A stretch of DNA of 64,000 nucleotides from assembly GCA_047495785.1 (NCBI GenBank), contig JBLDXI010000028.1:62001-126000 (forward strand), in the 5' to 3' direction. The translations under genes and the position numbers were made by a program. Numbering within the stretch: the stretch's first letter is position 1; each line of letters starts with the position of its first letter. Source of the DNA: Lepidodermella squamata (taxonomy: Eukaryota > Animalia > Gastrotricha). This document shows positions 22,612 through 58,596 of the stretch, piece by piece. The notes beneath the pieces were generated by a model, which worked only from the letters and a program-made list of their open reading frames with translations, made no database searches and had not been told where the DNA came from.

Positions 22612-25600
22612 TCACTGGTTGTTGAGCACATGAATTGCCATGCTGACGTTATTGTGGTGAGCTGCACCAGGCGACGATCTAGCACTGCCGCCTATGTTGT
22701 TGTTGTTGCTTGTGGAGCCTAGCAAATTCGAACCGGAATTGCCAGCTGCCGATGTGAGGCCGAGTCGGCGAGCCGTTTTGCCTCGCCTCGCCAGCAACTG
22801 CAGCAGCTCGGCCGCTTCCGAGTCGCGCTGCGCCCCGGCCCAGTCGTTCAGCAACGGCAGGTACAGCTCGCTGGCATCGCCTACAAAATCAATTCAGAAA
22901 ACTGTCAACAATAGTCAACAAAAGTTAGCGATAATCCCTGAATTGAGTTGAAATAAATTCGCTTCTAAAATGTCCTCAACATGGTGTGATTAGTGAAACT
23001 GTGGGATTGGAGCAAAAAATGGTGTTATCTCCACTGATGTATCTTCAAACATGACAGTGAAGAAGAGAATAGGGCTTTCGGCATTGACTTGTTGTCATTT
23101 TTTCCAACATGGAGAAACAACCCTCTCGACATATTCTCAATTCAGAAGAATGCAAGCTCTACTGATCAGTCAGATCGCAAGGATTGGATTGACAGTGCCA
23201 GGCGACTTCATTTCAGTGCCCCGAATGTGGATTCTTCAAGATGTCGCATATACTTATGTGATTATGTGATTAAAACAAACGTACCCAATAGGACGTGATG
23301 GCCGGCTGGCCAGACGAGAGCAGCCGAGCGTAGCAGTTTCAGCAACACTCGCCGTTCCGTCACCAGACCACTGCCAATGTTGTTGCTGCTGCTGCCTATC
23401 GCATCGCAGCCTTCTGCTGTTGCAGCCCCGTAGCAGCCGCCCCACGACGACGAAGCAGTTGCTTGCTTACTGTTGCCACTGCCACTGCTACTGCCTGCGA
23501 CGACGACGTTGTTGAGCAGGCGAGTGGCGAGGCGTTGCGGCAGCCGGGTGGCGAAGACGCGGCCGAGAGCGCGCGGCGACGACACCACCACGCCCGCCAG
23601 CAAGTCCAACGCAGCGCCCGCCAGCACACGGCAGTTCTGAAAAAAAGTAGTCATTCACTATAGGTAGCCCAATACTAAACAAGCACTTTCATGGCTAATG
23701 TAATCTAAATATATGCGCACGACTCCTTAGCATTTCCGACTAGTTTGCTTGAAAATTCGAAGATTCGCGTTTTTTGGCTCGGCTAAGAAAGGTTTGAAAG
23801 TTGCGACCTGGGCAAGCAGGCCAGATTCGTTAGAAATAAACTTACGGCGTCGAATTTGCCAGCTGATTGGCCTCCCGGCTGGTGGTGTTGCTGTTGCAGC
23901 AAATCGGGCATGAACCGCGCCGTCAGTTCGGCGAGGGCGAGCACGTCCTGAGCCGGCACGACACTTGGCATCGCCGCTGCAAACTGCTGTTGCTGCTGCA
24001 GCGTGTCGCTAGAAGCTGCTGCTGCTGCGACGAGGTTGCGGCCGAGCCTCAAACACGCGATCGCCGCCAGTGAAGCGTGGCCGCGCTGTTTCGCCAGCGC
24101 CGACGAGATGCTGCCTGGCCAAGACGCGCCCGTCGCCAGCGTCAGCAGCGTCGTCGCCACGATCGGCAGCACGCCGGCCGCCGAGCAACACGCCACCGCC
24201 GCCCGCCTGCTGCTGCTTTGACCATCGTCGAAGTGCGCCGAAACCGCCGCGAAATCGAGCAGGGCGGCGAGTTCTTCGAAGACCCACGGCTGCAGATCCG
24301 CGTTGTTGCTGCTGCTGCTGTTGCTGCTGCTGGGTTGGTTCTGGCTGGCTGCGTACGCCGACGCCTGGATGCGCTGAGCCAAGGCGACGATGCGCTGCCA
24401 CAGACGCGGCGATGCGAACAGCCGCCGAGTTGCGACACCACTGCTCGATGCTGATGCTGCTGCTGCTGGCAAGCTCTGTTGCAGGGCGCACAGGCAAGCG
24501 ACGGCTCGAATGCTCGCCAGCGTCGATTTTGCGTGCGAGGCGCCACAAGTCGCCCCTACCAGCAACAGTTCTTCAAATTTGTCCAATGCGGCTTCACTGC
24601 CTGAAATCATTCAAGACAAATCTTAATCTTTCATGCTCATCTTGGGAGGAAAAAAATAGAATTGATCTCGAATACTATTTCATGAATTAAAATGTACATA
24701 TCATTTTTGAAAGACAGAGTTCCAGGAATCCATTAAACACAAATCTATATCGATAGCTCATGTGTTGGAACCTCACATTTATGGTTCAAATATTGGGTAT
24801 TCCCTTTGCACGGACATGGTCACTAGCTACAAACAATGCTCTTTCATTGGTTCCCGTACCCTTCCATTTCAGGATTTAGTTTCAACCAATTTTTTTCCAT
24901 AATATTTATCAACAGCAGTTCTCACCTTCAACCTTAAATTTGTAAGGGAATTCACTTTTCCTCAATTCTGTGCTTGCGTCCAAAAATGGGAAAATCGAAA
25001 AAATCAAAATTAATTTTGAAAACTGTTCTCACCTTCAAACATGCCATTTGAAACGGCTGATTTCGTGGCGTTATCGCACCGAGCAGCAGCCGCGCACAAC
25101 AGCTGCAGCGTGACGGCTCCGACATGGCGCTGCGACGGGGTGGAACCCGGTTCCAGCAACACACTGACCGCCAACATGGGCGCCATTTCCGTCAGCATAA
25201 TCGCCGGGGTGCTCAAGCGCGACGACTCGACTTTGCCCACCAAATCATGCTGTACGACGGCGATGTGGAACCGACACAGTGCCTCGGCCAGTTTCGGCCT
25301 AATCGACTGCGAACACGCGGCTAGTAGCTGAGACGACAGCGCCATCAGTGTCCTGAGTGGGGCGATCAAGCCAGCCGGCCATCGGGTTGCACTCGCCAAA
25401 CTCGTCAAAGCAGGCAGCAAATTTCTGGCGACGCAAATTGCCAATCGATCGATTTTATCGACTTCAATCGTCACATTCTCGGGTAGAAAATCGACGAGGG
25501 CTGACATGGCTGATTCGAGCCACTCAATTTCGCACTTGAAACACTTCAGGAACGAACCAACCAGCCCTGACAAACTGCAAGACAGCGCGATTAAATCGAA

Positions 25601-28600
25601 ATTTGCCGATATTCTCCGATCGGCGATCGCTTGATTCGTAGCATGCGCGACTCCTCTCAGCAAAATCTCAACATCTTCATGGCTCAAAATCGACTGATCA
25701 ACCGCAAAATCACGCCGTGATCGGATCGATAAGCACGCGGCTAATAACGTGACACCAGCTGTTCTCAACTGAAGTTGACTCGCCAAGTTCGGTTCGGTGC
25801 AAATTCGATTGCCGACCAGGGCGATCAGTCGATTTCGATCACCCGGGTATCGGCACGACAGCATGACCAATCGAGCGCCGGCCATCAACGCAGCCGGGTC
25901 CTGGACTAGAAACGCGTCGATCAGCGACTCCAGTTGCCGATTGAACCGCTCAGCAGTTGATAGGGCCAAAATCGCGCAGTGGTTGCTCGAAGCAATCGAA
26001 GCGGAGCGGCACAGGAAAACCGATCGTGGTAGTAAAGCGAAGGCAACCGATAACGGCGACGACATCAGCCCGTCATCCGGCTTCAAAATCTGCTCGAACA
26101 ACGCAGATCCCGGCAGTAATTCGAGCAAACCCTGGCTTTTCGAACTCGCGATCGACGCCTTCGTGAAACTATGCAGCAGAACTGCGACTAGCGCGGCGGT
26201 CGAGCATGAATCCGATCGATTTAGGCAAGCTGTTATCGACTGGAGGACATCTCTCGAGAACGAAATCAACTGAGGCGCCAGGTCACTCGTGTCTAACAAA
26301 TGCCGCAGAGCCGCCATGAGGACATGCAGCAGTGCAACAGCGGCCGTTGACGATTCGATCGACGGCTTCGGGTCATCCATTGATTCCTGATCGCCCGATC
26401 GATTGCCTGATAACAGATTCGCCAGTGTTTCAACGCCGAATCGCACGATTCTAGGCAGATGGACGCTGCAGAACGCATTCTCCGCCTCGTCCAGTTCGAA
26501 ATCTTGACACATTTCGAGGCTGGTCAGTGCTAGCCGACTCGCGGCGGTCAGGCACCTGCAATCTTGTCGAGATAACGCCATGCTTGTCCCACTCGAGTCG
26601 AGTAATCGGCCGAGCCCGGATGAAATAATCGAATGGAGACACTCTCGACTCAATTTTTCACTCGATTGAAGTGACAAATCGAGGCACAGGAGAGATGCGA
26701 GGAATCGGTCGTGGTTCGTCGAATCACGGCAGGAATTCAAATGATTTTCTAATTCATCGACAAATTTTTGGTGATTTTCGAAACTCATTCTCGCCCATTG
26801 CGATGAAAACGAGTCGAATTTGTGTGAGCTGTGATGATTTGCCGTAATGATTGATTTCGGACTCGCCCGACACGGTTCGGCTGAGCAGGGCGTGAAATCG
26901 ATCGGCAACTCGAAATCAGCCTCCAGACAGGCTGGCAGCACAAAACAGCGATCATTCTCGCCGCAGCAATTCGAATGGGCGTCGATCAGCCGCGTCAAAC
27001 TGAGGACGCTCAGCAGTGCAGCAGCGGCGCCTGACGTCACGGAATCGTTCAGCAGACACGCGACCGATCGCAATAAACGCGGCTGTTCGAAAAGGCGGCG
27101 TCTCAAATCCGACGACCCAAGGGCTAGCCATTTCAGCCCGGCGAGCAAATGAGCCCGCGCTCTCAGGCCCAAGTTCTGCCGATTGTCTCGCAGTAACAGG
27201 GTGACTAGTAAGTCCAGCCCGCCCAGCGAGTCGAATCTCGCGTGATTTTCACGAATTTGAAGTAGGGCGGATAATTCGGTCAAAATTGGCGCTAAATCTG
27301 GATTTTCATTCGAACAACAGTAATTGGCCAGGGATGAGACCAGCGAGTCTAAACGGTGAGTCGAGTCGTTGTTGTTTTGCGTTAAAACCAACTGAGAACA
27401 CCGCGATGGAGCACTTGATAGCGACGCGAGTAGACCTGAGAATGATTCTGTGGTGACACAGGCCGTTAAGCCGGGCACGAGGCGAGATAACCGCCTGATG
27501 CCGTCTCGCCTCAGCGCAGGTGATCGATTTTGCCGCGAACACGCCGAGAGAAAGGCGAGGGCTACCGAGTCAGAATCACCACCCAGTTGCAACTCTGGGA
27601 TTGAGGCGACCGAGGCGATTAACGAGCTGAACAATTGCGAATTTTCGGAACCTGAGGCGAACAGCGGAACTGCTATCAACGGCAAGCAGGCGTAGACCAG
27701 CTCGAAAACCGGCTTATTGCGACTCGTCACTGAATGACTGGCTAACAACCGAGTTAACCACTGCACAGTTACAACGGGCCCGATTCGGCCTAGTAAACCC
27801 AAAATCGGGAGAGCTGTTTCGCCTTTTCGCAGCAAATTCATGGCCAAATCTTGGTTCGTAGTCACAATTTCTGTCAAAGATTCAACAATCAAATTCGAGA
27901 AATTCGTCGAGGTATCGCCGGCTAAGGCGAGAATTTTTACGAAATTTTGATTCGAGTCTTTCTCGGCTAGCCATTGAATGATTTTCCGCAAGAAATAGCT
28001 CGAATCCTCGTTGAAAATGTTCTGAAGGGCTGGCAGCGAAAGGTCGATCAGTTGCAAAATTTCATCATCAACAGAATCAGTTGGTTCATCGTTGTCGAGC
28101 AGTTTTTGCAATTCTGACGCGTTTTTGCCACATTGCGCTAGTTTTTGGCATTCGGCGAGTTCTGTGCGCAAAAACACGCGCTGACTCGCGCTTGAGGCGT
28201 CACAGCCACTCGCTTCGACCCATCGAATAGATGCTTCAATCAACTGCGAATTTCCGTCGAAATTCGGGCTCAAAACTAGGTTTCGCAACTGCCTAGCTAT
28301 AGACGCCATCAGCGCGTGACCATTCGATTTTTCACGCGACGATTTTCTCATGATGGGCAGACATTTTCGCAATGCCATTCCAGCCAACAACCGGCGAATG
28401 TTTGCCACACTCTGCTTGGCAATCGCTTGTTTTTCGTCATGGTTTTTGGTACTTGCGCTACAATCTACTCCAAAAACTGCAGCGATTTCACTGGCTAAAT
28501 CGGCCAGTGATGAATTAATGGCTAAAATTCGTAGCCTTCGACAATTTTCTGCCTTGCAGCACTGAAGCAACTCGCTTTCACTCGTCGAATTCAACACGGC

Positions 28601-29824
28601 TGATACAAAATGTTTGTTCAGAGCAAAATTTTCAAGCAGCAATTTATACACTATTCCAATTAAATGAGCCACCGAGTACATGTTATAGTAGTTTGGCGCC
28701 GAAGATTTTTGCTGCGGTGGTGTCATGCAACGATGGGCAGTGTCTACCAACAGTTCAAGTCCGTCCAGCAACGTGTCAAAGTACAACGAAATCGAGCCAG
28801 TTGAATTTTCAAAATTGCAACTAGCAATTCGCTCTAAATAACAGCCAATCGTATCTACAACGGGTAGAAACGTCTCTTCGCCAACGTCAAACTGGTGTAG
28901 ACAGGCCTTCGAGTTACTGCCATTCGCGCCTGACATCAGTGAGTAGAGAACTGAGGAGAAACGAGCATGTGTTGCTATGGTGTTTGTCGGAACTTCTGCG
29001 AACATTAAATGGCGAATAGAAAATAAAGCTCGCAGCAACTGCTGACTGCCTAATACAGCATCCGAAGAAGCCGTCGAAACTAAGAGCGAACGAACGGCTT
29101 CATCGATTGTTTTGACGTCCTCAGAATTCTTTGGGTCGTAAGGTTTAGATTTGGAGCTTGTTTTCAGATTACAGCCTTGTAAGCAAACACAACAAGAACT
29201 AGTGCTTGGTGTTGCTGAATTTCTAGTTAATTGAAGTGATGCAGATGTTGAGTCGTGAGCAAGACCTATCGATGTTGCCATTGATTCGTCGCCAGCCGAT
29301 AGGTTGACTGTCGAAGTACCAGATGGCACTGGTTCTGGCAGGTATGATAGCAACTGATGAACACTCTCCGTTGGGCAACTCGGCAGGTCTCGGCATTTTA
29401 AAAGGCTTTTTGTAAGTTCTACAATATCCGCTCTCCCGGAAAATGCCTTTTTCGCTTCAGGGGATATCTGCGGGAATCAAAATGTTGTAGAGCATTGCAA
29501 ACTCCTGGAGATCTCTTACCTGCAGCGATTCCGTTAAAGTTACTACAACTTTCCCAATGAGCTCAGCTGAAGGTGCCGGGTCAAAACATTCCGAAATGAG
29601 AAATGAAACAAATGCATCCACAGTACTTCGAGCTCGAGCACTTGTGACGAGTAAATCAGCAAGACTAATTATTCCACAGCGCAGTTTCAAGAAGAACCCA
29701 TCAACAGCACGTCGTCGAATTTCGGCTATATTGCTGCCTATAGAATTATTTCAACGCAGTAAGTAAAAAGCAGATTGCAGAGCAAAGACTTACCAAATTT
29801 TCCGAGAACTATCTCAACTGACAT
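22612..29824 (-). CDS. RTTN: rotatin / Ana3 (centriole/basal body protein), 6 exons, ~2019 aa
   Basis: Spliced N-terminus MSVEIVLGKFGSNIAEIRRRAVDGFFLKLRCGIISLADLL resembles the rotatin N-terminal domain (KLGH..AEIRERAL..I..K....LI...DL). Long Leu-rich helical-repeat-like body. Exons 29824-29794, 29737-29520, 29467-25033, 24600-23846, 23636-23285 and 22880-22612 are phase-consistent. Confidence 0.8.
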
Positions 29825-34924: not shown

Positions 34925-35320
34925 TCGTTAACGACGAAATGACCCCCTGTTTTTTTCGCATTTTTACACGTTTCAGAGGGTCCTGATTCCGATATAATAG
35001 GAAGCTCAATTTGCCCCAGGGTTGGGGAAAATTGGACAGGTGTTTTGGGGCTAATTGGCCACCCTTATCCTTATAATGGGTTTGTATAATTAAGTAATTG
35101 TGAGGGTTGAATGGCAGTCTCCAGTGGGTGACAATTGAGAATGTTCAAATGGCTCGAATCTACTACGCTGGCTTAGCAGGTGAGAGGAGACTTAATGCTT
35201 ATGTCTGGGAATCTATATTTGCTATTAACAGGGTGGGCAAAGAAAACAATCTGGGCTGTTGATTTCTGATAGGCTTAGCCTTAGCCGACGCCGGCCCTTT
35301 AAATCATAAAAATGGGCAAT

Positions 35321-36921
35321 TGGCAAATGGACCCATTATCACCACTTTTGTTTTCAATTTTTATAAACGATCTCATTCCTTTCCTAATGAAAGTTTTCCC
35401 TGGCTTGACCTTCGGTGAATATGTAGTCTTGGCAATCCTATACGCCGATGACTTGGTCCTACTGGCAGAAAGCGCTGAGCAGCTGCAGAGCCTCCTGGAT
35501 GAGCTAGTAGCTTATGCTGAAGAAAATTCATTAATAATTAACGTCGATAAAACAAAAATCTTGATTTTTGAAAAGAAACTTGTTGAGAATAATCAACTAA
35601 AATTTTATCTAAACGGCGAACAACTCGAAAGAGTTAAAGAATTTAAATACCTAGGAGTTTATTTTACTAATAATTTGAATTTTGATAAAATGGTGGAGGT
35701 TGTCAATGCGAATGCGAAACGAATTGCCGCTTTTATACCCAACATGATCGATCGGTTCACCACATATCTACCACCCAAAACGTTTCACCTTCTCTATAAT
35801 TCCTATCTGGTTAGCAACTATTCCTATGCTGGAGGATTTTGGGGTCAATCAAAAAAGGCCAAAATTTTTCCTTTCAATACTCATTTCGTAAAACAGCTCT
35901 GCCGAATTCCCGCCGCGGCGAGAGACGAGCTCGTGAAACGTGAATTCTACCTAGACCCTCCAAGCCTAATCCTCACTAAAGCAGCTATACGTCACTTTCT
36001 TAAACTCAAATTCGAGGACAACCATATACTGCTGAAGACAGCTTTCGAAATAATTGACTCAAACAAAAATCTATATAAACATATCTTCAAAAATTTACCA
36101 GAAGATGTTGAAAAACTGGGCGGAAAAGAAATTTTCAATGCTACATCTAAATTTGAGGGCCTAGCCCTGCTTGAGAGATGGTATGAGAAATGGGTCGAAA
36201 ATGACAAATTGTCGACGGCCTCCTCTCTAAAATCGCTCTATCAAAATCCTGTTTACTCTGAAGAAAAATTTGACAAACTACTAATGTACTCGAGTACGCG
36301 GCAAGCTTTCTGGTCACTTAAAAATATCCAAACGCTAGCTATGATTAGAACTAATTCCATTCATAAACCGTTTTGCTATATAAATAACTTCGGCCTTAGA
36401 TGTATTTTCTGCTATAAAAATAGTAACAATCCCGTCCTATCTCTAAATAGCTTCGCTGACTCAGTAGAACTTTTAACTCACCTATACCTAGAATGCAACT
36501 ACTTGCCGTATCTACATAATATAAATAACGCTGAAATGAAACCTGATAAAACTGACATAACTAATTCTATAATTGGCTGTGAATCTAGCGGCTCTGCACA
36601 TTTATCGAAATTACTATCCCTCGCCTACAATTACCGGATGACTCTAAAATTGCATACATATCCGCCTATTCCATCTACCTAATCTTGACCAACTATATCG
36701 GCAATATTAATAAAAAATGTGAATAAATATTACTCTGAGCATCACTCTGGAAAAAACTACCTCTGCCTATGATATTTTTGTGTGTGTGGTACCATACTGT
36801 GCTATATTACATTTATTATATATTATACGATATTATTATAACGATATTTCTGATGCGCCCAAAGCCCAATCGTGGCCGGTGCTTTTATTTTCGTTTTGAA
36901 ACAATAAAACCAACAGCTCTC
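35321..36921 (+). mobile_element. 5'-truncated non-LTR retrotransposon (RT C-terminal half plus CCHC motif), possibly RTE-X-like
   Basis: ORF 35312-36682 has DPLSPLLFSIFINDL, YADDLVL, KYLGV and a C-terminal CIFC...HLYLEC. AATAAA at 36903. 14-bp TSD TAAAAATGGGCAAT at 35307-35320 and 36922-36935. Clade assignment is tentative. Confidence 0.9.
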
Positions 36922-41298: not shown

Positions 41299-44200
41299 TG
41301 TACTACCGCAAATGCTATTCGTTTAGCGTTTATTTCGGCCGTGTCCGAGTCGATGGTTCGCCGACAGCAGCAGCAGCAGCAGACAGTCAGCAGTAGAATC
41401 GTGTCATCTTCCGCCAGTCGGCTAATGTCTTCTTTCAATTCAGAGCGCAGGGGATTTAGTGACCAGAATCGAACGGGACACGCTTGTTGTTGTTCCGGGC
41501 GCCGGGCGACTCGTTTATACCCGGCCGCCCCACTCACTCGCCAGCTGCTGGGGCCACCGCACGAAGACCCGATCCCCGGAACGACGAAATGTTGACGAAG
41601 CCAGATGACAAACACTACTGGCGGTGGTTTATCCATTGAGGTTTGAACTTTGCGAATCCGTACGGAAAATTATCGGCGTACACCATTTTCCGAGACAGGC
41701 GGCACACGATTACAATTTGTCTCAAGGCAACGGAGCTAGCGATGTCCCAGTTTCTTCCCGAAAATTGTGTACGTGTTGAATTTCCTCCGGATAAAATTGG
41801 CGAATAAATTTCGGATTTTGAAACTCAACTTCAATATGCAAGGCCGTTAAAATTGCGTCGTCGAATATGTAGACCAGCTGCTTCTTAGTGCATTTGAATA
41901 ACGCTTGCGGGAAAATTACGTGGTCGGAAGTAAAAGCGTCTGTGTCAAGTTGGATTTGTCGTTTTGAACGAGTAGCGATGGCCGAAGAAATTATCGAATC
42001 AGCGAGTGCGGCTACGGCGAGCCACAGCCGAAGGCCTAAAAGCGACATCGAAATTCGTGAATGAGTAAATATTGAGAAATGTTTACAGTTCGATGATTAG
42101 GTGATTTTTGTTTTTCGAGCGGGTATTACATATGGCTTGCCGGCGTTCGGCGAAGTTTGAAAGACGGGGTTGGCGAAAGTTACTGGCGTGTGAAGGTTCT
42201 ACGGTTGGTGAACGACCGTAGCGTCAAGATCGGAATTAGTGAGCGTGTTGTTCCTAACGCCGGAGGCGCTATTTGCGCGCTTTTTAGGCGTCGTCCTGCT
42301 TGATTGATTTTTCTCGGGTGACGAGGCTGGTCAGTGTCACGGGGCCACCGATTGTGGTTGATTAGGCGGTACAAGGCTGACCTAGTACATGTCGAACTGG
42401 AATGATGTTGGTCGTCGGTGGAATCCTGGCGATGCTATCAAATGGCCGGTGTTTCGCATTCGAAATTTGTGGGCAAGTTTTGACGCTAGTATTGGACTGA
42501 ATTGATAGATGTTTGTCGGTGGTGACACGGAGGAGTGACGATTATCTTCGTCAGAGGTAGACGGTGCTGGTCCAGTTATTATTGGTGGTGTCGGGATTCT
42601 GGGCGGAGTTTCAGGCAAGTCTGACGTGCTTCGCGGTAACGGTGGCGTTGTTGGGGTTGCGGTCGACGGCGTTGTATTTGCGGTTGTTGTAGTCGGCTTT
42701 GTACAAGTAGACGTTGCCGTTGTAGTACCGGAACTGACCCACCCGTCGTGAAATGTTGTCACGGGTTGGCTCTTGTAGAATCTTGCGACTAATTGTCTGG
42801 CGAAGATCAGGCAACGGCGACGCTGCGGCGGCGAGCGGCCGCGGCGCAGTAGACTTGGCAGTGCTTACAGCCGACTGCTGCGCTTGCGAATAGCGATCAG
42901 CAGTGGGGTAATCGCGCAACCAGGCCAACTTATGGCGGTTGCGATGGGCAAGGATATCACGACCGGACATATCATAGAAGGGAATAGCGCAGATAACAGG
43001 CGAAACACGAGCCACTACGGAATAGGGACCGTTGTAGCGAGAGGCGAATTTCGGTATATCACATCGGGCCGGTTAATTGGCACGTGGAGGAAGACAAGAT
43101 CGCCGATATCGAACGGCTCGCAATTGCCTGAACTTTCTCACGAGCACGCACGAGTTGGAAACGAGCTCCAACGCCGTCCAAAGCGCGACGAATTCGTCAT
43201 ACAAGCCGTAGGCACGCAACTCGTTCTGAGTTTTGGGCTGGGACGCAGGCTTCTCAGCAGAGCACTGCCAGTCTATAACCAGTTTGGGCGTGTGACCCAG
43301 CATAAGATACGCTGGTGGGTGGCGATGAGTCAAATGGTGAGACGAGTTGTAGCCGGAGCAGCAGGTCTCGACGAAGCGGCAGCAGTCGAGATGTTGGCCG
43401 GGTACGACGTATTTCGTGATGCAGTTATTTATGACTAAAATTGAGCTTTTAATACGTCGAATCGCAAACGCATCAGTCACGTCCTCGATGTGCTTGGAGT
43501 TGAAGTAGCGGGCGTTGTCATAGAGCAAAGCGCGAGGGCCACCGAAAATGTAGATCCAGTCGAGCAATTCCTCAATCACGGTTTCAGACTTAATATCCGA
43601 AATGGGCTACCACGACGTTAAGCCACTAAAATGATCGGAAATGATGAGAATATAGCACATTCCACGACGAGGCGTAGGGTATGGACCGGCTACGGCCCAA
43701 GTGAGAAGCTCGTTTACGTCATGCGAAGAGATGGGCTCAATCGGAGCACGTGGATGTTTCACAGGGTGATCACGAATTTGGCACACCATATTCGGCAGTA
43801 ATTTCCTCGTTATTACGGAAGTAGAATCGATCTTTTAAGGTGGATAGGGCGCGTTCAACGCCGAAATGGCATTTCTCGACGTGCGTAGCGTTAAGCACGG
43901 TGACGATGAGATTTTCAGGTACGACGATCCGGTAACCCGATTCAGAGGCAGGCTAGTAGCGACACAACAAGCCACCAGGCGCTATTAAATATTTGCTACG
44001 CTTTTTCTGATTGTGACGAAGACAGAGTTTCTTTGAGCGAAACCGACGATTGGCGGCTTGTGCCGCGAGTAAAACATCTCGGGTCAAGTTAACGCCACAA
44101 GGCGTGAGAGAGCGGAATTCCCGGTACGCGACATCGCATCAGCATTCGCATGGATCGTACCTCGGCGAGTTATTAAATTCAGCAGATATTACTGTAGTAT

Positions 44201-45260
44201 AATGAGGTATTTTGACAACCGCCCTTCTGTGTCCTCCCAGGTATTCAAAGTACGAAGAGCAGCGGCGTGAGGTTGTAATCGAATTCAAACCCGGCAGATG
44301 TATTAAGTTTCGTTCCGGCGGTGGTTGTAATAGCAATCGAAAACGCGGTTGGGAGGTTGGGTTGCTGAGAAGCGATGACCAGAGTAAGCTGCGAAATTTT
44401 GCGATAACGAGCGGCGTAGTCGCCCAGCTTCCTCAACTTGACGGCGAAATTCTCAGTGAACTTCTAAGCCACAAAATGCTCTTCGAAACCGGCTTCAACG
44501 AAACTTCCCGGCGTCGTGTCCTCAGCGAAAAACGAGCAGTGTTGCTTGTCGACGTCGTCTAGTTGGAATTTCTCGCGCATGCCCACGCCGTGAACCAGAG
44601 ATATTGAGCGCGTTTTGAATCGCTTGACTTGAGCGGTCAGTGAAAATGCTCGAGGGCGAAGCTAAAATGTGAAAAATTAATCCAATCGATTTACTGGGAG
44701 ATTTAACTTACTCGGAGATGTTGTATGATGGCTCGTCCAGTAGGTTCTAGAACTCATCACCACGTCGAACCACGAGTTTGATAGCGGTCTTTTCAGCCCG
44801 GCGGCCCGCATGCTTCAGCGACGAGTCCCAGCGAAAACCGGCGATGGTGATGCTGTCATTGAGCTCGTCACTCTCGCCTTCATCGTCGTTGTCGCCGTAG
44901 GCGGACGAGTGTTACTTTGTTCGGGCGCAGTCGTCGTAGATCACGCCGAAATCGTGAGTTGCCATCAACTTGCAACGACTCAAACCCGGCTGAATAGCTC
45001 CAAGGCCGAGTCGCTTCAGCCGAGTTCACATGTAGACGGTGTGTAGGCCGCCGACATAGTCGCGCAGGAACACCTCGCACAGGTAGCCCTCGATGTCGAA
45101 GGCGGCGATTTTCTTTCCCTCGTAGTCCGCTAGCCGGTACTTGAGCGCCACGCCGGTGCCGCCCGGCGCTACGATGCCGCGACTGCTGCTGCTGTTGCCA
45201 CCGCCACGGCCGAAACTCGCAAAACAGGTTATTGCTCACCATCAGTTCTAATACAAGCAT
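41299..45260 (-). mobile_element. decayed Ty3/gypsy LTR retrotransposon (integrase remnant, downstream env-like ORF, probable 3' LTR)
   Basis: Frameshifted integrase at ~43900-43430: H..CHFGVERALSTLKDRFY, CQIR..PRAPIEPI, AGPYPT..YILIISDHFS, FGGPRALLYDNARYFNS. LTR-like block with TATAAA (41519-41514), AATAAA (41334-41329) and end ...GTAGTACA (41299). Outer limits approximate. Confidence 0.7.
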
Positions 45261-45665: not shown

Positions 45666-46461
45666 ATGACTACACAGCTGAGAATTGAGAAGTGTTGGGA
45701 ATTTTTCGAAAAAACTTCGGAAAATTGAGTGATCGAGAAAAGCCGCCTTGTTGAAGTACTAACCAAATCGAATGACGAATTGATACATCACCTGATAGAG
45801 TGCCTGCTGAAACCTGGAAAACCATTCGGCGATGAGATGGCCATGGATAGGAAAGACTTTCGGAAATTCATTTGCGCATTTGTTGGCATTTACGAAATGA
45901 TGGTGAGGGAAAAATTATTTTATGAAGTCCTTAAGTATCAAGTTGAATCGAAGGAAACGAAGCAGCAGCTAAGAGCAGAGGCTGATAAAAAGGTTTTCTT
46001 TGGTTAATTTCAAGAGCGATAATAAAATGCTATTTTTTCTACAGGATGAAGTGATGAAACAAGCTGCAGGAAAGGTTTTTCACGGTTGAAGTCAGCGAAA
46101 ATGAATTTGAAAAAATTTGTAATTTGTTAGATTGATGATCTTGAACGAGAAATCAGGGGTCTGCGCCAAGAAATAGCCGATCAGGTTTGGTAATATAAAT
46201 TTTATGACTGCAACTTACTAAACTGTAATACACACTTGCAGGGTATTTGTGACAGGAATACGAGGCGACTGGAAGAATAAAAGGAGCTACTTCGGCGACG
46301 AAGTGCTGCAAGTTTCCAAAAGAAACTGGTGCAATGGGAAAAATAATTCCCACTTCTGGGTTCGAATTCTAAGGACTGATGACGCGCTCGAAGACTTGAG
46401 GCAGAAGTGTCTCACCTACTTTGTTGGCCTGGACCTGAAATTCATCCTACAAAATGACTGA
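45666..46461 (+). pseudogene. decayed spliced orphan gene
   Basis: ATG 45666 frame continues through a TGA into ORF 45729-46007, then a short GT..AG intron-like gap (~45993-46044) and a further coding-like block 46249-46461. No recognisable homology. Confidence 0.35.
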
Positions 46462-46890
46462 AAGAGCACAAAATGTTATCGCCGAAAATGTTGTATCGGC
46501 TGATCGAGGCTCGTTCACCTTACTGTATCAGCATTAAATCTGGAGTAAATCTGACCTTGGAACAAAGTCTGCGCATAGTTATCTCACATTTTTCACTAGC
46601 TTCAATCGGATAAGGTTCCACACGCTTTCATAACTTCCGATTTCTCTGCTCATTGTTTTAAAAATCTATGGAAATATGAAAAACAATCTGGATAAAATTG
46701 AGTGGACCAAAGCGGAATAGCTTTAAATTGTTTTAATTACTTTTTTACTTTAGGCTGCGTTAAAATTATTGATTAAGACGTTGGCGGCACGAACATTCCC
46801 AAGTTTAGTAATTGGTTACCGCTCGTCAGCATTACTGTAAGTCATAATTAATTTCGCAAATCTGGAGATTAATCAATTCAAATTCATTAC

Positions 46891-48583
46891 ATGTGGCAGA
46901 AAATGTGTCAAAAAACGGAACTTTTCCAAGAGCCGGATGTATATCAGCCATTGGCAATAGCAGATAGCGATATATCAGAAGATGATGGTTTATGGAAGAT
47001 CGACCAGCGCTGTGACAAGCACGAAGCTTTTCGAGTTGAAATAACAACGTCTCATCTGCTTACTTTCATCGTCATCGTTTTTTTCAACTGGCTACTTTTA
47101 TGCGGCGACGTGCGTAATTGCAATATTTGGTCGATATGTAACATTAAAACTAGAGCCCTTTTACAAATTTCGAAGCAAATTGACGGAAAAATTTGGAGAT
47201 GTTAACAAGAATTAGGTAAAAAAAGACAATACTCCGGCTCGGAATTTCCTATAAAATGTATTGCCCTATGAGATTTTTCTGTCGTTAAAATTAGCCTAAT
47301 CTTTTCTGCAGATTGAGGCCAATCCTGGTCCTTGGACAAGAGAAGAGCTGTCTCAATTTACCGATGAAGCACGTTCGGCGCACTTCATGAACCAGTTTCG
47401 AAAATTTGACGAAGTCACCTACACTCTGAATATCGAAAATGACTTGTATTTCAATGGTATTGAAATAAGTGCAACAAAATCTCTCCCCTTCTCATCGCTC
47501 AGGAAAAGTGATGTAATACACCCTTTTTTACTAGGAAAAACAGGCCACATCTTATCCGCCCAACTTGCCGTAATTTTCTATCACTTTTCTTTCCTTTTCA
47601 TCAATCCTAACGCTAGAGCTTATTATGGTAGGCTTGCTAAAACGTTCTTTCTATTTAGCGAATACATATCCGAATATATGGACGAAGACGACACATATAG
47701 CTTTTTCTTTTCATATCGCCATTTATTTTACCTTACCCCAGAACTCTGGCTAAATTTGAATGGAAAACCTCTCTTGGAATGGGACGACTTTTGTACGTTA
47801 TTGAATTCCTCTTTCGATCATTTCGGTTTGAACAATTTATCGCTTATGTACATAACGAGGTTCAACGAAAACGTGGATGATATATTGTTTTCTTCCGGAA
47901 ATGTTTTCTCGCCAGATCAATTATTTTTCGAAAATTACAGTTCGTATAACGGAAGGTTTTATGAACTAAACGAAAAAACTATTGTTATTGCTACCAAAAA
48001 CACTTTCGCTGCGCGACTGTTCCGATTGCTAATGAATTACAAAAAAAATGTTGACAACGGTTTTAATTTTGTTATTGTCTCTTTCAACCTTAGCCTTAAA
48101 AAAAACCAACTTGTTATAATGGATTCTTTTTGTCGACAATTCGGTATTCGAAAATTCTTTCTCCTAGTCGACGCAAACTTCCATGAAATTAGTACATACT
48201 ACAAGACCAGAATCTCAGGCTTCATCAAATTTCAGTTATTATGCCCGTTAGTGTTTCAGCATAATGAAAAATTCGTTCCTTACACTGTTGCACCTGAATC
48301 ACTTCTAAAGTATATTCTCCAGCTGTCAAACTCTGATAATAATTTCAGGATTTGTGCTGGCCTCGTTCTTTCAACACTTAAAACTCAATTTTGGCTGGAG
48401 AAATATTATATTGGTGATGGCAAGTTGAATGAACTGTTGGAATCTATTGTAAACTATGATAATTATTGTGCAGAGGTTAAACGAAAAACGAAATTGTTCT
48501 TAGATGATAATCCTTCAAAATGGGATTATTTGCCAGAAAATGTCAGACAATCCCTAGTAATTTTATATAAAAAGTCATTTTAA
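46891..48583 (+). CDS. orphan two-exon gene (~496 aa) with an intron-split 2A/StopGo peptide
   Basis: Exon 1 (46891-47109) ends LLLCGD at GAC|GTGCGT. Intron has CTAAT branch (47296) and CTTTTCTGCAG. Exon 2 (47312-48583) starts IEANPGP and is in frame with the 398-aa ORF 47387-48583. Confidence 0.75.
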
Positions 48584-48587
48584 CATA

Positions 48588-49043
48588 TGTTTCAATCGCG
48601 TTTTAGAATTTTAAAACATGCCTATGAAGCCGTATTCGCAATTGAACCGTTCGGAAATTACAACTTTATCAAACTGGGAATTTCTTTTGAGTGAAGGTTT
48701 TCACAATAAAATGGCTCACTTCATGTTGTAATTCATGTTATATTATTGCTAAAGGTTTAGCGAAATTTACATGTCGAGAATGCAAAGAAAGGATTGATTT
48801 ACCGGACGCATTTTTTCAAGCGGATATGGAAATCAAAGCTTATATGCTTACAAAACAACGATTTCAATTCGAATATGTAAGTCCTGATACATTCTAATCT
48901 ATTAGACTTATGGTATAACATAGCATGACGAATGTTGGACGAGTTATACAAATCAATACAGGATTCGATATGAAAAAAGCCAATTGAAGTTGAAAACAGC
49001 AAGTCCCATGGTAAATTTTAACATGGAAAATATCTGCGATTGA
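48588..49043 (+). pseudogene. frameshifted small ORF with CxxC..CxxC zinc-ribbon-like motif
   Basis: ATG 4 nt after the preceding stop. CCNSC...CREC in ORF 48691-48897, reached only via a frameshift. Confidence 0.35.
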
Positions 49044-49179
49044 ATATTAAATTTTCTGAGATTTCTTAATAAAAATAATTGTTGAGGAGTGTGCTCCCAG
49101 CTTATTAATTTCACATCTCGTTCGGCTTGGATACGGCATCAACTGTACACTACAACGGACTGTAACCAGCATCGCCGAG

Positions 49180-52100
49180 ATGAAGCCGGAATGCCTCCTG
49201 CTACTGTCGATGTTTGGCGCTGTGGTTATCCTATGGACTGTCGACTTGTCCTTGGCTGGGTCACTTCTCGCTTTTGACCTGGCAGGACAGACTAATTCAA
49301 ATTCGAACTTGGCTGCTTCTACGCCACTCAAGGCGCGTGTGAATCGCGTGCCGTTTGAAACGTGGTGCCGTGAAATCAACGGTCAAGACGACTATAGTGT
49401 GCTCGGACACGACGGCAGGCCAACAGAAACCACGACGCATGAAGGTTTTTCGATCTTTTTTTGTTATTTGGCCCGCGATCCAAAACGTCAAATTACTCGC
49501 ATGAGAGGTTTTATTCTGATTTTACTCTTGATTTCGGGGGTTCAGCCAAATCCGGGGCCCCCTGCTAGACACGAATTACCAGTCACACCAAATCATGAGT
49601 TGAGCGATGTAGTTCAGAAATTGAATTATGGGGACGAAAAAATGAAATTCATACACGCGGTTCATTTCAATGTGAATGGCTTGACATGTAAACTGGAAAA
49701 ATCTAGTATTTTCAAATATGAAGCCCTCGCTGAATTCTGCTCAGTGAATAAGCCTGATCTAATCCTAATATCGGAGACGAAAATTCCGGCGAATTCTACA
49801 CCGAAATTTGTCGAGGATATGTTTTCAGACTATAGTTGCATTTGGGTTGGACGGGAAAATTCTGGCGGTGGCGGTGTAGCAATATTAGTCCGCAACAATT
49901 TGGTGATCAAAAATTATTGGTCAACCTCATCCACAATCGAGAACATTCACGCTTTAATCGAATCACCAAATGGAATGACATTCACAGCATCCGTGATATA
50001 TCGATCACCAACAGTAATGCCCAAAATTCCAGTCGAAGAACTAGACAGTGTTTTAGTTGATCTTACTGCAAAATCGATGCATGTCAATCATCGATTTATA
50101 GGCGGAGATTTCAATTGGGACCTTCTCGATATCAAAGTTGACTCAGAATTACGAGACACATTCAATACGTTTGATCTGAAACATAGCTTTCCACACTGCA
50201 TTACTAGGCCAGCCGCTCTTACCATGCTCGACCATTTTTGGACCACTGAAAAGGAAGAAAACATCATCTTATCGGGAACAATACATGGGCTTAGCGACCA
50301 TCACGGGATCTTGTTAGTTATCACGGACCAGGGAACAAAAAGGTTTAAAAACCAAGTCGCAACCGAATCTAAGTATCGTAACTTGAAAGCTATCAAGGCA
50401 GACCAGTTCAATTATGAACTCGGTAAGGCACTAGGAAGTCCTAGCATCGAAACCGGAGATAGCTCACAGAATTGCTGGGATAAAATCCAGACAGCGATTA
50501 TTAAGGTTCTTGATAAACTTGCACCAGAAACAGTTAGAAAATCTACGCACCGCCGCACCAAACACCGGCCAACTTTTCACTCACTTAGCAAACAACGAAA
50601 GGAACATCGAAAAATCCGGAAATCGCGAAGGGCCAAATGGCGCAGTAAAGTTACTGAGGCAGGGCGGGATTCCAAAAAAATCTGGAAGGTGGTTAATGAG
50701 TTTAGACCTAAGAAATCGTCCAACCACAACGACTTTCCATCTCTGAATAAAGATGAGTCGTATCTCCTGGCTAACACTTTCAATCAGATGTTCTCGAACG
50801 TTGGCAAAAAGATAGCAGATTTGCTTTTGAATCGCCTAGACTTCGACCGGAAGAACCCGAAGAATCAGGAATTTTCATTTAGGCATATCACGCAAAGGGA
50901 ACTATGCCTGGCATTCTCAAAAGTGAAAAACAAATCTACGACTGGTCACGATGGTATTCCGGAGTCTATTCTTAAACTAGCTTCTGATGTTTTGAAACCT
51001 CATTTACTCGTTCTGTTCAATGTAATAATTGACAATAACACAATTCCTGAGCAATGGAAAATCGCAGTGGTTCATCCTCTTCACAAAGGTGGGTGTAAAT
51101 CTGACGTAGGTAATTTTAGGCCTATTTCAATACTGTCAGCCATTTCCAGAACTTTTGAACGGTGCATTTCCATGCAAATTAAGGAACATATCACCAATAT
51201 CGAGTTTCTTTCGCCTAGCCAATTTGGTTTCAGACAATATCATTCTACCGACACATGTCTAGCGAAACTCAGTAATGATCTACGTAAGACTCATGAACAA
51301 AGCAAAATATCGGTAGCTATTGCGATAGACTTGAGCAAGGCTTTTGACTCACTGCATCACCAAGGTGTCTATAACTCCTTAATTAGCGCAGGTTTCACAG
51401 AGAAAGCAGTCGGATTAATTCGCAATTACCTTGAGAACCGAAAACAGTATGTTTCGATAAACAATACCTTTTCAGACCATTTGCCTTTGCTCTACGGCGT
51501 GCCCCAAGGTAGTGTACTGGGGCCGCTACTTTTCACGCTATATATTAATGAGATGGCATCGATTCCCAGATTTGCGAAACTAGTCCAGTTCGCAGATGAT
51601 ACCACTGTATATCATTCAGGAAAAGATGTTGAAAAGTTACAACAGGAGCTTCAGTACGACATTGATCAATTGAGTGTCTGGCTCGCAGCGAACAGTCTAA
51701 TGGTAAACGGGAAAAAATCGCAGATGATTGTTTTGCCAACCGACTACAACACCACTTCCCCACCTAAATTCGAAATCAAAATTGACGGCTGCTTGATCGG
51801 AACAACGTCATCACTCAAAGTCTTGGGGTTTACTCTTGACAATAAATTGGGATTTAAGGAACATTTAAGGGGGGTGAAAAACAAATCACGTAGTGGCTTA
51901 TTCGGACTGAGGATCGCTGCTAAATACCTTGATCGAAAGACTCTCAAACTCATGGCAAATGGCCTAATATTCTGCCACTTAATGTACTGCGATACAACTC
52001 TCTCGCAGCTGGCACCGACCAAGCTCAGCAAACTACAACGTCGCCAAGACCAGGCCGTAAGAATCATTTGCCACGCTCCGATGAACGCGGACCCCGCACC

Positions 52101-52722
52101 GCTAAGACAAAAACTCGGATGGCTGGATCTTGACGGAAAACGAAAAGTTCACCTGGCAACACTGATCTGGCGCTGCATTAATGGTGAGGCCCCGGTAGCC
52201 ATAGCCAACTTCTTCAAACTTCGAACCGCACCAATGGCTTCTACCCGCAAACAAAACGCCCTCAAAGAACTCTCAAACATCCTAGAGGTGCCCAGGACTA
52301 AGTCAGCGATCATGGATCGGTGTTTGGCTCACCATGGATCGGTATTTTGGAACTCTCTCCCCGACCACATCCGCACATCCAAAACTGCCGACCAATGCAG
52401 AAACTTGGTTTACCGTCACCTGCTTACACAACAAAAAGAACTTACCTCAAATACCGCCGCCTGAAACCAGAAGACAAGAGCATCTGCATTTTATATTTTT
52501 ATATTGATCCTGCTACAAACCAACATTCATCACAATTGTTTTCTTTGTTGAGCTATCTTCTTTTTTATACATATAAGTTACATGATGTTTTATAACTATC
52601 TAATCTTGTGTACAGTTTAAATCGAACCTAACTAATCCATTGTCTTTTTTTACAGCTGAGCTTTCCAACTTTTTCTAAAAACGGATGAATGGCTCATAAA
52701 TAAAATAAATAAATAAATAAAA
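49180..52722 (+). mobile_element. CR1-group LINE (Crack/L2-like) with intact 1094-aa APE endonuclease + RT ORF
   Basis: ORF 49180-52464: FNVNGL, ISETK, GGGVAI, GDFN and SDH (APE); NFRPISIL, DLSKAFD, GVPQGSVLGP and FADDT (RT); WNSLP tail motif. (TAAA)n 3' tail at ~52697-52722. 5' boundary and TSD not identified. Confidence 0.95.
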
Positions 52723-55938: not shown

Positions 55939-58596
55939 ATGGAGGTTGATACGAACCGCGTATTATCTCCGGAAGCTGGCAATGGCCATCACTTGCAGCC
56001 ACCAGGCGAAGAAGGAAGAACGTCCGACAACGACGAAGACGTCGAAGATGGCGAGGTGGTGGACGAGCCCGCCGCCGCTCGTCACCTGGGTGAGAATCTC
56101 GAAGATGGTGAAGTCTCCGAGCAAGAGGAGGCCGAAGAGGGCGAGAGTAAAGACGACGAACCCGCCAAAAAAGAAACTCAGCCGCCACAGCGAAAAATCA
56201 ACCGCATCTGCCAGTATTTCCAGAATGGCCGGTGCTACAAAGGCAACAACTGCCCGTTAATCCACCCGGATCCTAATGCTACCAATGGTTTGTTGACTGT
56301 TCTTACCAAGAATTCGTCGTGTTTCATTTCGGCTGGTTTTTTTCTCTAAAGCAATGATGGGCCCGCGTGGACCGATCCACCCTGCTCAAGCCGCAATGAT
56401 GATGGCAATGGCGGCGATGCGTGGCGGCATGCGCCCGCCAGGTGCTTCCCCAACCGCCGGTGCAGGTGGCGGCGTGCCTCCTCTACTCACATCGCCTGGT
56501 GCCGGTGGGCGTTTTCCGTTTCCGTTCCCTTTCAAACCCGCCGCACAACCTGTTGGTTTTGTCGTGGTTACACGTAACAAAAACACTCAATGTTTGTTTA
56601 CAGGTTGACGCGGACGCAACATCGCCGGGCGGGCAGTACAACGTGAAGCCGGTGAATTTCGGCGAGCCTGACCAGGAGAACGAGTCAGCGCCGGCGCAGC
56701 CAGCCAGCGACGACCAGGGCGGCGTCAGCTCGGCGTGGGAGCTCGGTCTGAAGCGCGCGAAGGAAATGAAGAAGCAGGCCGAGTTGCGGCGCAAAATGGC
56801 AGCCGAAGCGCCCGAGAAGCCATTGCCCGCCGCCAGCATCGCACCTGTTGAGAAGAAACCGATCGAGAAGGAGGCCGAGAGTGGTAGTGGCAGGCGCAGT
56901 CGGAATGAGAATAAGTCGAGCAAGGTGCCAGTTGCGGGTGAGAGGAAGTCGTTCCGCATGAACGACCACCAGGTGGACCCGTGGCAGCGGTCGGCCGCCG
57001 TGCCGTCCGCCCCGGCCGGTCCTCACCGCAGCCGCGACCGCACGAGGCGGGCGTCTCGCTCCGGCTCGGAGTCGTCGGGCTCGTCGCGGTCTTATTCCGG
57101 TTCGGGTTCATCATACTCGCGGTCGGGTTCCAGCTCAACGGGCTCGTCCTATTCCGGCACTGGTTCGTACTCGGGCTCAGGCTCGCGGTCCGGCTCATCA
57201 GGTTCGTCCTACTCCTCGTACAGTGGTTCGTCGTATTCCGGGTCGTCTCGATCGCGGTCTCGCTCACCCCGTGGTGGTGGCGGCGGCGGGGGCCGAAGCC
57301 GACCTAGTGATAGTAAAAACAAGTCGAGTAAGTCGGGCGGAGGTAAAGCGTCGATTCCTGCGAAATCGCGAGTTCAGCCGGGTGGCAGTAGCAAATCGCC
57401 CGCGAAGAGCTCTGGTTCAAAGCCAGGAGGCGCTTCTAAAGCGGGCGGTGCCGCGAAACCGTCGTCAACTGCTCAAGGTGCTAAACCGGCGGCTTCGAAG
57501 GCGCCGAGTTCGGCCGCCAGTGCTGCGAAAACAACGTCTAGTCAACAGCCACCGAAGCCGGCGAGTGCGACTGCCGCGGCGGCTGCTGCTGCCTCTTCGA
57601 AACCGGCAGCAACGTCGGCAGCTGCGGTTGCGAAACCTGCGCCTGCTCCTGTTGCATCAGCGGCGAGTGCAGCTGGTCAGAAGAGACCGGCGGCGCCTGC
57701 CTCTGCAGCTGCGGCGGCTGCTCCGGTCCCGGCCGCAGCTGGTGGTGGCGGCGGCGACGCGGCTCCAGCGGCGAAATCAGCCAAACTCTCCAAGGTTGGT
57801 TTTTTCTCGCTCAGAACTCTTGTCGCAAACTCTTGTTGAATAGCCGAGAAAAACGGTATCCCATAGATTATTTAGATTTTTATTCAAAATGGGCACACAG
57901 TAGTTCAGTGGATAGCTATCTGCTGTGTATTGAGCGTCAAGATCGATGGGCACGAGCTCGATCCCCACCCGGGTCGACCGTGGTTTATCAATGACGCTCT
58001 ACCCCGACGGTGGCCGACCACTCAATCGTGTTACAAAAGTGAAAAGTGGTAGATTAGGAGTGTCAGCGAGACTGCACTAATCGCTACCGAGCTGTCCTGA
58101 AGAGACCCCAACAAGCGACCCTAAGAGCGCTCATGGCTTCGGCCCATTCGGCCCATGGCTTCGGCCCATCCATTCAACGAATGGGACGTCTCAATAATAA
58201 AAACGAATTTTCGAATTTTTTTTATTCAAAATATTATTCAAATACCTTGTGACATTGATTACCTCTCAAGGCTCTAGGAAATTCAAAATTTCGCGATCTT
58301 TATCAGTTGATCGCGTAGCTTTGGAGATGGGAAAAATCAACCAACTCGGATATTTCCCTGGATTCACTTCATCAAAGTGTAGCTAGATTCTTCCGAGTGA
58401 AGATTGGCTAGTGGAATTTCTGATTTTGCTTGTAGTTTGCACTCACACTGATTTTTAGAATAATAATAAAATATTATATTTTTTATCCACGATTTGAATG
58501 GTTAATTGTTGCGTGACTTGCTTACAGGACGATATCATGCGTCAAATCGCTAAACTGGACGCGGCAATAGCTAAAAAGCGAACTACAAAGAAGTGA
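55939..58596 (+). CDS. ZC3H18: ZC3H18 CCCH zinc-finger protein (cap-binding/NEXT adaptor), 4 exons, ~602 aa
   Basis: LEDGEV, CQYFQNGRCYKGNNCPLIHP, SAWELGLKRAKE, DPWQRS, SR-rich region and C-terminal DDIMRQIAKLDAAIAKKR match ZC3H18 blocks. Exons 55939-56287, 56352-56551, 56604-57794 and 58528-58596. Confidence 0.85.
57891..58218 (+). mobile_element. tRNA-derived SINE in ZC3H18 last intron
   Basis: A-box-like TAGTTCAGTGG (57901), B-box-like GAGCTCGATCCC (~57954), short A-rich end, 14-bp direct repeat TTTTTATTCAAAAT at 57877-57890 and 58219-58232. Confidence 0.65.

Follow-up and report, generated by a model that had tools for sequence, protein, structure and literature searches.

2A peptides, a standard tool of biotechnology, occur in RNA viruses, in retrotransposons and in a few cellular genes. 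A locus in the genome of the gastrotrich Lepidodermella squamata raises the question of whether such a peptide can be divided between two exons and assembled only by splicing and, if so, whether the intron acts as a switch for recoding. The locus lies at positions 46891-48583 of the window, i.e. the whole stretch of 64,000 nucleotides of contig JBLDXI010000028.1 that was analysed, and the original prediction, made from this stretch only, was of a StopGo peptide created by the removal of an intron and heading a long orphan protein. N-terminal 2A-like leaders of cellular genes and 2A peptides of retrotransposons are already known (PMC4981915, PMC13405545, PMC12338488). Neither a natural 2A interrupted by an intron nor a 2A on DNA transposases of the P or the MULE/Mutator type was encountered in the searchable literature of one library, absence from which is no proof.

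Organization of the locus

The coding part of exon 1 (46891-47109, + strand) translates into 73 amino acids, acidic in the N-terminal half and then hydrophobic, up to the end ...LLTFIVIVFFNWLLLCGD, and its last residues, LLLCGD, directly precede a GT at 47110 (donor gtgcgt), as originally predicted. An in-frame TAA is found upstream (46870-46872); the leader may start at M1 or at M5, additional non-coding exons upstream of exon 1 are possible, and a genome search returned no second copy of this exon. Its final part (47053-47109, +) encodes the 2A peptide's first half, HLLTFIVIVFFNWLLLCGD, which is hydrophobic and rich in Leu and occupies positions -25 to -7 relative to the bond predicted to be skipped.

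The following 202 nt (47110-47311, +) form a predicted spliceosomal phase-0 intron of the GT...AG type, AT-rich (GC 0.33), with a pyrimidine tract and the 3' end tcttttctgcag. The branch point that had been proposed was located as a branch-like CTAAT at 47295-47299, 17 nt before the intron end, and the acceptor as ctgcag. The length of the intron is not a multiple of three, an in-frame stop interrupts it at 47203-47205, and an in-frame TAA is found ahead of exon 2 at 47297-47299. According to the list of open reading frames, the intron-retained frame ends at 47205, giving the 104-aa product that had been announced for intron retention, and because of the TAA the AG at 47310-47311 is the sole acceptor that opens the long frame.

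Exon 2 (47312-48583, +) consists of 423 codons plus the stop codon and begins in frame with the second half of the 2A peptide, IEANPGP (47312-47332, +), in which StopGo is predicted to occur between Gly (47327-47329) and Pro (47330-47332). The translated frames bear out the product sizes expected on skipping, namely 79 aa through the Gly and 417 aa of orphan protein from the Pro. The first ATG of exon 2 is at 47387, downstream of residue 13, where conservation with the paralog described below starts. A putative polyadenylation signal, AATAAA, was identified from the sequence at 48705-48710 (+), about 120 nt past the stop codon. The window contains two NPGP-coding sites, the other one being in the LINE located downstream.

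The joined motif and its leader context

Upon removal of 47110-47311, LLLCGD and IEANPGP are in frame and D(V/I)ExNPGP is complete in the predicted mRNA, the claimed match to this consensus and to the upstream LLxxG being exact in the predicted joined frame. Leu is found at -10 to -12 and Trp at -13, with FIVIVFF farther upstream, a hydrophobic Leu-rich context like that of class-A 2A peptides when compared with PMC13405545 and PMC4981915, and the frame past the Pro stays open for 417 codons after the Gly, in line with the second product of a class-A 2A. The membrane or signal character of the leader was judged by hydropathy alone, with a Kyte-Doolittle maximum of 2.65 over residues 56-70 within a hydrophobic stretch spanning about residues 55-72. 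The motif ends at residue 79-80 of the present gene, and the leaders of its paralog and of the P-like gene on contig C4 measure about 23-31 aa.

The Leu residues at -10 to -12 fit the Leu-rich upstream context reported for eukaryotic 2A-like peptides, among which those with poly-Leu at -14 to -10 often reduce the amount of protein or cause fall-off in place of clean skipping (PMC13405545). The last ten residues of the joined peptide are also similar to picornavirus 2A sequences ending ..LLSCGDIESNPGP and ..LLMLCGDVELNPGP (PMC11512398). Skipping is sensitive to the upstream context, and its certain prediction is impossible.

The intron in a paralog

One point of the original prediction concerned paralogs, which might keep both the intron and the motif or might instead expose the 202 nt as an inactivating insertion. 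One intact paralog of the exon 2 protein was found, on contig C9 (L002/L019; E 8e-32, 31-32% identity), and it keeps both, with a leader ATG..MRLPVLFAVNLLQLCGD, a 51-nt intron (gtaatt...tttcag) at GD|IE and IESNPGP in frame with 475 codons. No ATG occurs near the start of this long frame, which therefore needs an upstream exon, and since conservation between the two paralogs begins upstream of the first internal Met, both are initiated in an upstream exon. The codons for C, D, I, E, N, P and G of the motif differ synonymously between the present gene and the paralog (TGC/TGT, GAC/GAT, ATT/ATC, GAG/GAA, AAT/AAC, CCT/CCA and GGT/GGG, respectively); as they do so on both sides of the intron, it is the joined peptide and not the DNA that is under selection. 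The two predicted halves would make a meaningful peptide only when joined.

An inactivating insertion was ruled out, as the paralog and the P-like genes described below have introns of other lengths at the identical junction. The donor gtgcgt and the length of 202 nt are nevertheless atypical when compared with the introns of 51-64 nt at the other loci. A search for sequencing runs of this organism returned none from RNA; the sole public run containing the stretch is of genomic DNA, and its contig keeps the intron at a flat depth of 41.6. The comparisons with the paralog and the P-like genes support the prediction of a 2A motif assembled across a real, conserved phase-0 intron of an intron-containing nuclear gene, heading an orphan protein.

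Split and unsplit 2A motifs in the genome

A whole-genome pattern search for (I/V)ExNPGP returned 25 sites and only one for the reversed control, a 25-fold enrichment. At six of the 25 the motif directly follows an AG, and 51-202 nt upstream lies a ..GD|GT donor with a preceding Leu-rich stretch, the chance of the combination of AG and ..GD|GT being roughly estimated at 0.002 per site. The introns of all six are rich in AT (GC 0.18-0.33), and each of them contains stops or shifts the frame through its length.

Three of the six split sites, L036 (C4), L038 (C29) and L040 (C16), precede P-element transposase domains of three types (Tnp_P_element HTH, TNP-like RNase H and GTP-binding insertion domain). 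Searching the genome with the P-like transposase yielded further copies with 54-78% identity, the identical donor/acceptor codon boundary and introns of 52-64 nt, one of these copies being frameshifted. At least nine split loci of this kind were thus counted (C4, C16, C29, C66, C24, C25, C46, C30 and C7), the family comprising L036, L038, L040 and L046-L051, several members of which have upstream exons resembling membrane segments. The motif has drifted at some of the split copies, to DVQSNPGP, DIQLNPGP or DVERQPGP. The sole homolog of the P-like transposase from outside this genome (P0001, a Logan contig from genomic DNA of another sample) has no NPGP.

A further split site, on contig C1 (L011/L037, C1:4939551), reads MRPLMV...FLLLICGD, followed by a 64-nt intron and IESNPGPYGES...; no family was found for its neighbouring open reading frames, nor was the following exon found. 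The junction is therefore common to at least 12 loci (the present gene, the C9 paralog, the C1 gene and the nine P-like loci), so the treatment of the locus as unique does not hold. The downstream proteins of the orphan, C1 and P-like groups showed no detectable relation to one another.

Unsplit 2A motifs are also present in the genome, in APE/RT and zinc-finger/RT retroelements, e.g. as a contiguous GDIE(T/M)NPGP. In addition, transposase domains of the MULE/ZSWIM1-3 type are preceded by unsplit 2A sequences, ..LLQSGNVEMNPGP at L041 (C3:912000-919400) and ..LLLANDVEMNPGP at L042 (C32:3749500-3757000), the former locus also having a weak match to Ulp1 protease. Mutator-type DNA transposons of this genome thus likewise carry 2A-like peptides. 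We had considered that unsplit 2A motifs might mark retroelements and split ones DNA-based genes, a division that was rejected given that these two unsplit families precede MULE/ZSWIM-type transposases; for the same reason, an intron is no general requirement for 2A use here. A decayed copy of the orphan family (L005, C7:945592-948852) carries, at about 1360-1400, a contiguous degenerate ..LKSGFEIDETNPTP some 100 nt upstream of the homologous part, which may be the remnant of a 2A leader without a recognisable intron.

The orphan protein and its copy number

The 423-aa product of exon 2 belongs to no Pfam family and has no homolog detectable by word-indexed search or by an exhaustive phmmer search of 1.84 billion representative proteins. 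A profile search with the two paralogs returned no homolog either, the best hit of a profile search against the PDB had an E-value of 0.67, PHROGs returned nothing and the scores in the ESM Atlas (≤0.88) were under the recognition level. The AlphaFold2 model built from the two-sequence alignment had a mean pLDDT of 38.8 and its fold is unusable. The orphan status originally assigned to the 417-aa protein is thus upheld in all of these searches.

Sequencing depth over the gene equals that of the flank (41.6) and is 4- to 50-fold higher beyond about 49060, the start of the LINE, and 46456-49022 has no DNA-level match elsewhere in the genome. The present gene exists in a single copy and is distinct from the LINE, which is multi-copy. 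Fragments of the orphan family occur on C9, C17, C7, C32 and elsewhere, several with internal stops, and no protein of a transposable element (TE) was found near any member of the family. No similarity between the orphan protein and the P-like transposase was detected by tblastn or by hhalign (probability ≤2%), and the Tnp_P_element HTH, TNP-like RNase H and GTP-binding insertion domains are absent from the orphan protein. Nor does the gene resemble a non-LTR retrotransposon reading frame, as it has single-copy depth and shows neither APE/RT domains nor an ORF1 architecture. The possibility that the gene is part of a transposon was therefore rejected, there being no nearby TE protein, no DNA repeat over the gene and no relation to the P-like transposase.

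Comparison with known 2A systems

Viral class-A 2A peptides (FMDV F2A, T2A, picornavirus 2A-NPGP) share with the present peptide the invariant D(V/I)ExNPGP and the upstream LLxxGD, but they are internal to polyproteins of RNA genomes and never spliced. Among cellular genes, NLR proteins of Strongylocentrotus purpuratus (SpNLR2A) have 2A-like leaders at the N-terminus that are active in recoding (Roulston et al. 2016, PMC4981915). A leader of this type has its 2A within about 30 residues of the initiator Met and a predicted signal-peptide function. The likeness to the present gene lies in a cellular, non-viral gene with a Leu-rich hydrophobic N-terminal leader ending D(V/I)ExNPGP, for which two outcomes, a separated cytosolic protein or a leader-targeted fusion, were proposed; in length and style the SpNLR2A leaders are also like the 23-aa leader of the C9 paralog and those of the P-like genes (..LLLLRSGD VERNPGP). 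The present leader differs in its 79 aa with an internal hydrophobic stretch and in being followed by an orphan protein, the DEATH-NACHT-LRR architecture of SpNLR2A being absent downstream of the 2A. It also differs in the intron splitting the motif, as PMC4981915 mentions no introns in SpNLR2A genes.

2A-like peptides of non-LTR retrotransposons (Odon et al. 2013, as cited in PMC4981915 and PMC13405545) represent a motif class that is present in this genome too, including in the LINE 480 bp downstream of the gene. Those elements are intronless and multi-copy and their 2A precedes APE/RT or zinc-finger-RT domains, whereas the present gene occurs once, is interrupted by an intron and lacks any TE domain. 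In the P-element/THAP9-like transposase genes of this genome, by contrast, the first coding exons carry the same leader with an intron at GD|(V/I)x, and these are, like Drosophila P elements, intron-containing DNA-transposon genes, although the orphan protein itself has no similarity to their transposases.

Proposed mechanism and alternative explanations

Judging from sequence comparison, the locus is probably a real, single-copy, lineage-restricted coding gene of at least two exons, with a StopGo 2A-like leader that is split by an inherited, constitutively spliced phase-0 intron and undergoes skipping in part. The intron would be an inherited part of a "2A leader" module common to the paralog, to one further gene and to the P-like transposase family, and inheritance together with the leader would explain its conserved position without regulated retention. 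We infer that ordinary, probably constitutive, splicing would join LLLCGD to IEANPGP and that the Gly-Pro bond would most likely be skipped in a fraction of ribosome passes, releasing the 79-aa leader with its hydrophobic C-terminus and a separate, Pro-initiated 417-aa protein; on read-through, the hydrophobic stretch would anchor or target the resulting fusion. If the NLR leaders of the sea urchin are a guide, skipping in some ribosomes should be expected for this leader. If both the splice and the skipping hold true, an exon-intron-exon module could be the unit in which cellular 2A leaders are inherited and perhaps shuffled, and split leaders would systematically escape motif searches run on unspliced genomic DNA. 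With more than 12 loci and graded decay of the motif, this genome offers a tractable natural system for studying the roles of N-terminal 2A leaders in transposases and host genes.

It is possible, although unlikely, that the leader exon ending ..LLxxGD, the phase-0 intron and the (V/I)ExNPGP exon form a portable cassette that exon shuffling or transposon-mediated capture has moved between P-type transposase genes and unrelated ones (the orphan family and the C1 locus). The intron would then have been kept because regulated splicing decides if any downstream protein is made. If so, StopGo recoding would be under splicing control, echoing the control of P elements through an intron.

Just as unlikely is a relic. 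The locus would then belong to a decaying family that possibly stems from a transposon, would have ceased to be expressed or been inactivated recently, and would keep the motif and the reading frame only for lack of time. The orphan protein has no homolog outside the genome, several family members are decayed fragments with internal stops, and the gene sits near a contig end in a neighbourhood rich in repeats and retroelements, all of which would suit a relic. An open frame of 423 codons in DNA of 37% GC is, however, far beyond chance, and the full frame, the intron and a perfect motif with synonymous codon changes persist in both of two copies that are only 31% identical, indicating long-term purifying selection.

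The switch proposed in the original prediction appears somewhat more doubtful still. Regulated retention would here toggle between the truncated 104-aa product and the 2A-separated pair, in the manner of the third intron of the Drosophila P element, which is controlled by intron retention. In favour of a switch, the intron has stayed in place despite deep divergence and although the downstream proteins are not homologous, P-type transposases are headed by the same design, and intron retention would lead to an early stop at every locus examined. An inherited intron position nonetheless requires no regulatory role, and no conserved intron sequence or structure was seen among introns whose lengths range from 51 to 202 nt. 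Moreover, the coding stretch of the leader is alike only in the close pair L017/L023 (90% identity, with 49-63% for all other pairs), and the unsplit 2A of the two MULE-type families does without an intron altogether. An intron-containing nuclear gene with a split motif is supported by comparison, but nothing indicates regulated retention. Splicing is a need of any gene with introns, and the gating of recoding by splicing is unsupported, as ordinary constitutive splicing accounts for everything seen.

Poorer still are the prospects that the leader is not a separating 2A in vivo and serves mainly as a signal-anchor or as an attenuator of expression that lowers protein abundance. The effects on abundance and the fall-off often seen with poly-Leu 2A-like peptides (PMC13405545) are compatible with such a role, as are the strong hydrophobic stretch at residues 56-70 and the P-like copies that keep leader and intron while losing the E or the N of the motif. 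A recent preprint suggests that Leu-rich leaders of this kind may chiefly lower the output of protein. A mere membrane anchor, however, would not need the full D(V/I)ExNPGP, which both paralogs retain intact and whose amino acids are conserved between them. Finally, the chance juxtaposition of two half-motifs around a GT..AG interval, which the shortness of the motif alone could suggest, is practically negligible given the 12 or more loci split at one and the same codon boundary and the 25 motif sites versus one in the control.

Genomic neighbourhood

Elsewhere in the window, a 1447-codon open frame (25010-29353, -) encodes a Leu/Ser/Ala-rich protein without a Pfam match, and a 456-aa reading frame (35312-36682, +) contains the C-terminal half of an RVT_1 reverse-transcriptase domain and represents a truncated copy of a retroelement. 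Two GC-rich islands (12001-14000 and 56001-58000; GC 0.60-0.63) have long overlapping frames on both strands with no Pfam match; these frames are probably not genes but artefacts that stem from the composition of GC-rich repeats. Upstream of the gene, 44000-45213 and 45733-46455 match 10-20 other places in the genome with 74-86% identity and are unclassified repeats or gene-family fragments; they include a 92-aa reading frame at 45729-46007 that has no Pfam match.

The LINE downstream (49061-52464, +; reading frame 49180-52464) is a multi-copy APE+RT non-LTR retrotransposon (Pfam Exo_endo_phos and RVT_1) with a read depth 4- to 50-fold above that of the flank. Its reading frame has a signal-peptide-like start and, about 115 residues in and ahead of the APE-RT region, a non-canonical 2A-like ..LLISGVQPNPGP. 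The approximately 38 nt directly 5' of the LINE (49023-49060), where read depth reaches 56151, match with 97% identity the intergenic spacer (L052, 188-223) of an 8.46-kb rDNA unit that has 18S-5.8S-28S on one strand and 5S on the other and forms arrays on C22 and C27. This match suggests that the LINE targets the rDNA spacer and carried rDNA flank along, or that it lies at a target-like site.
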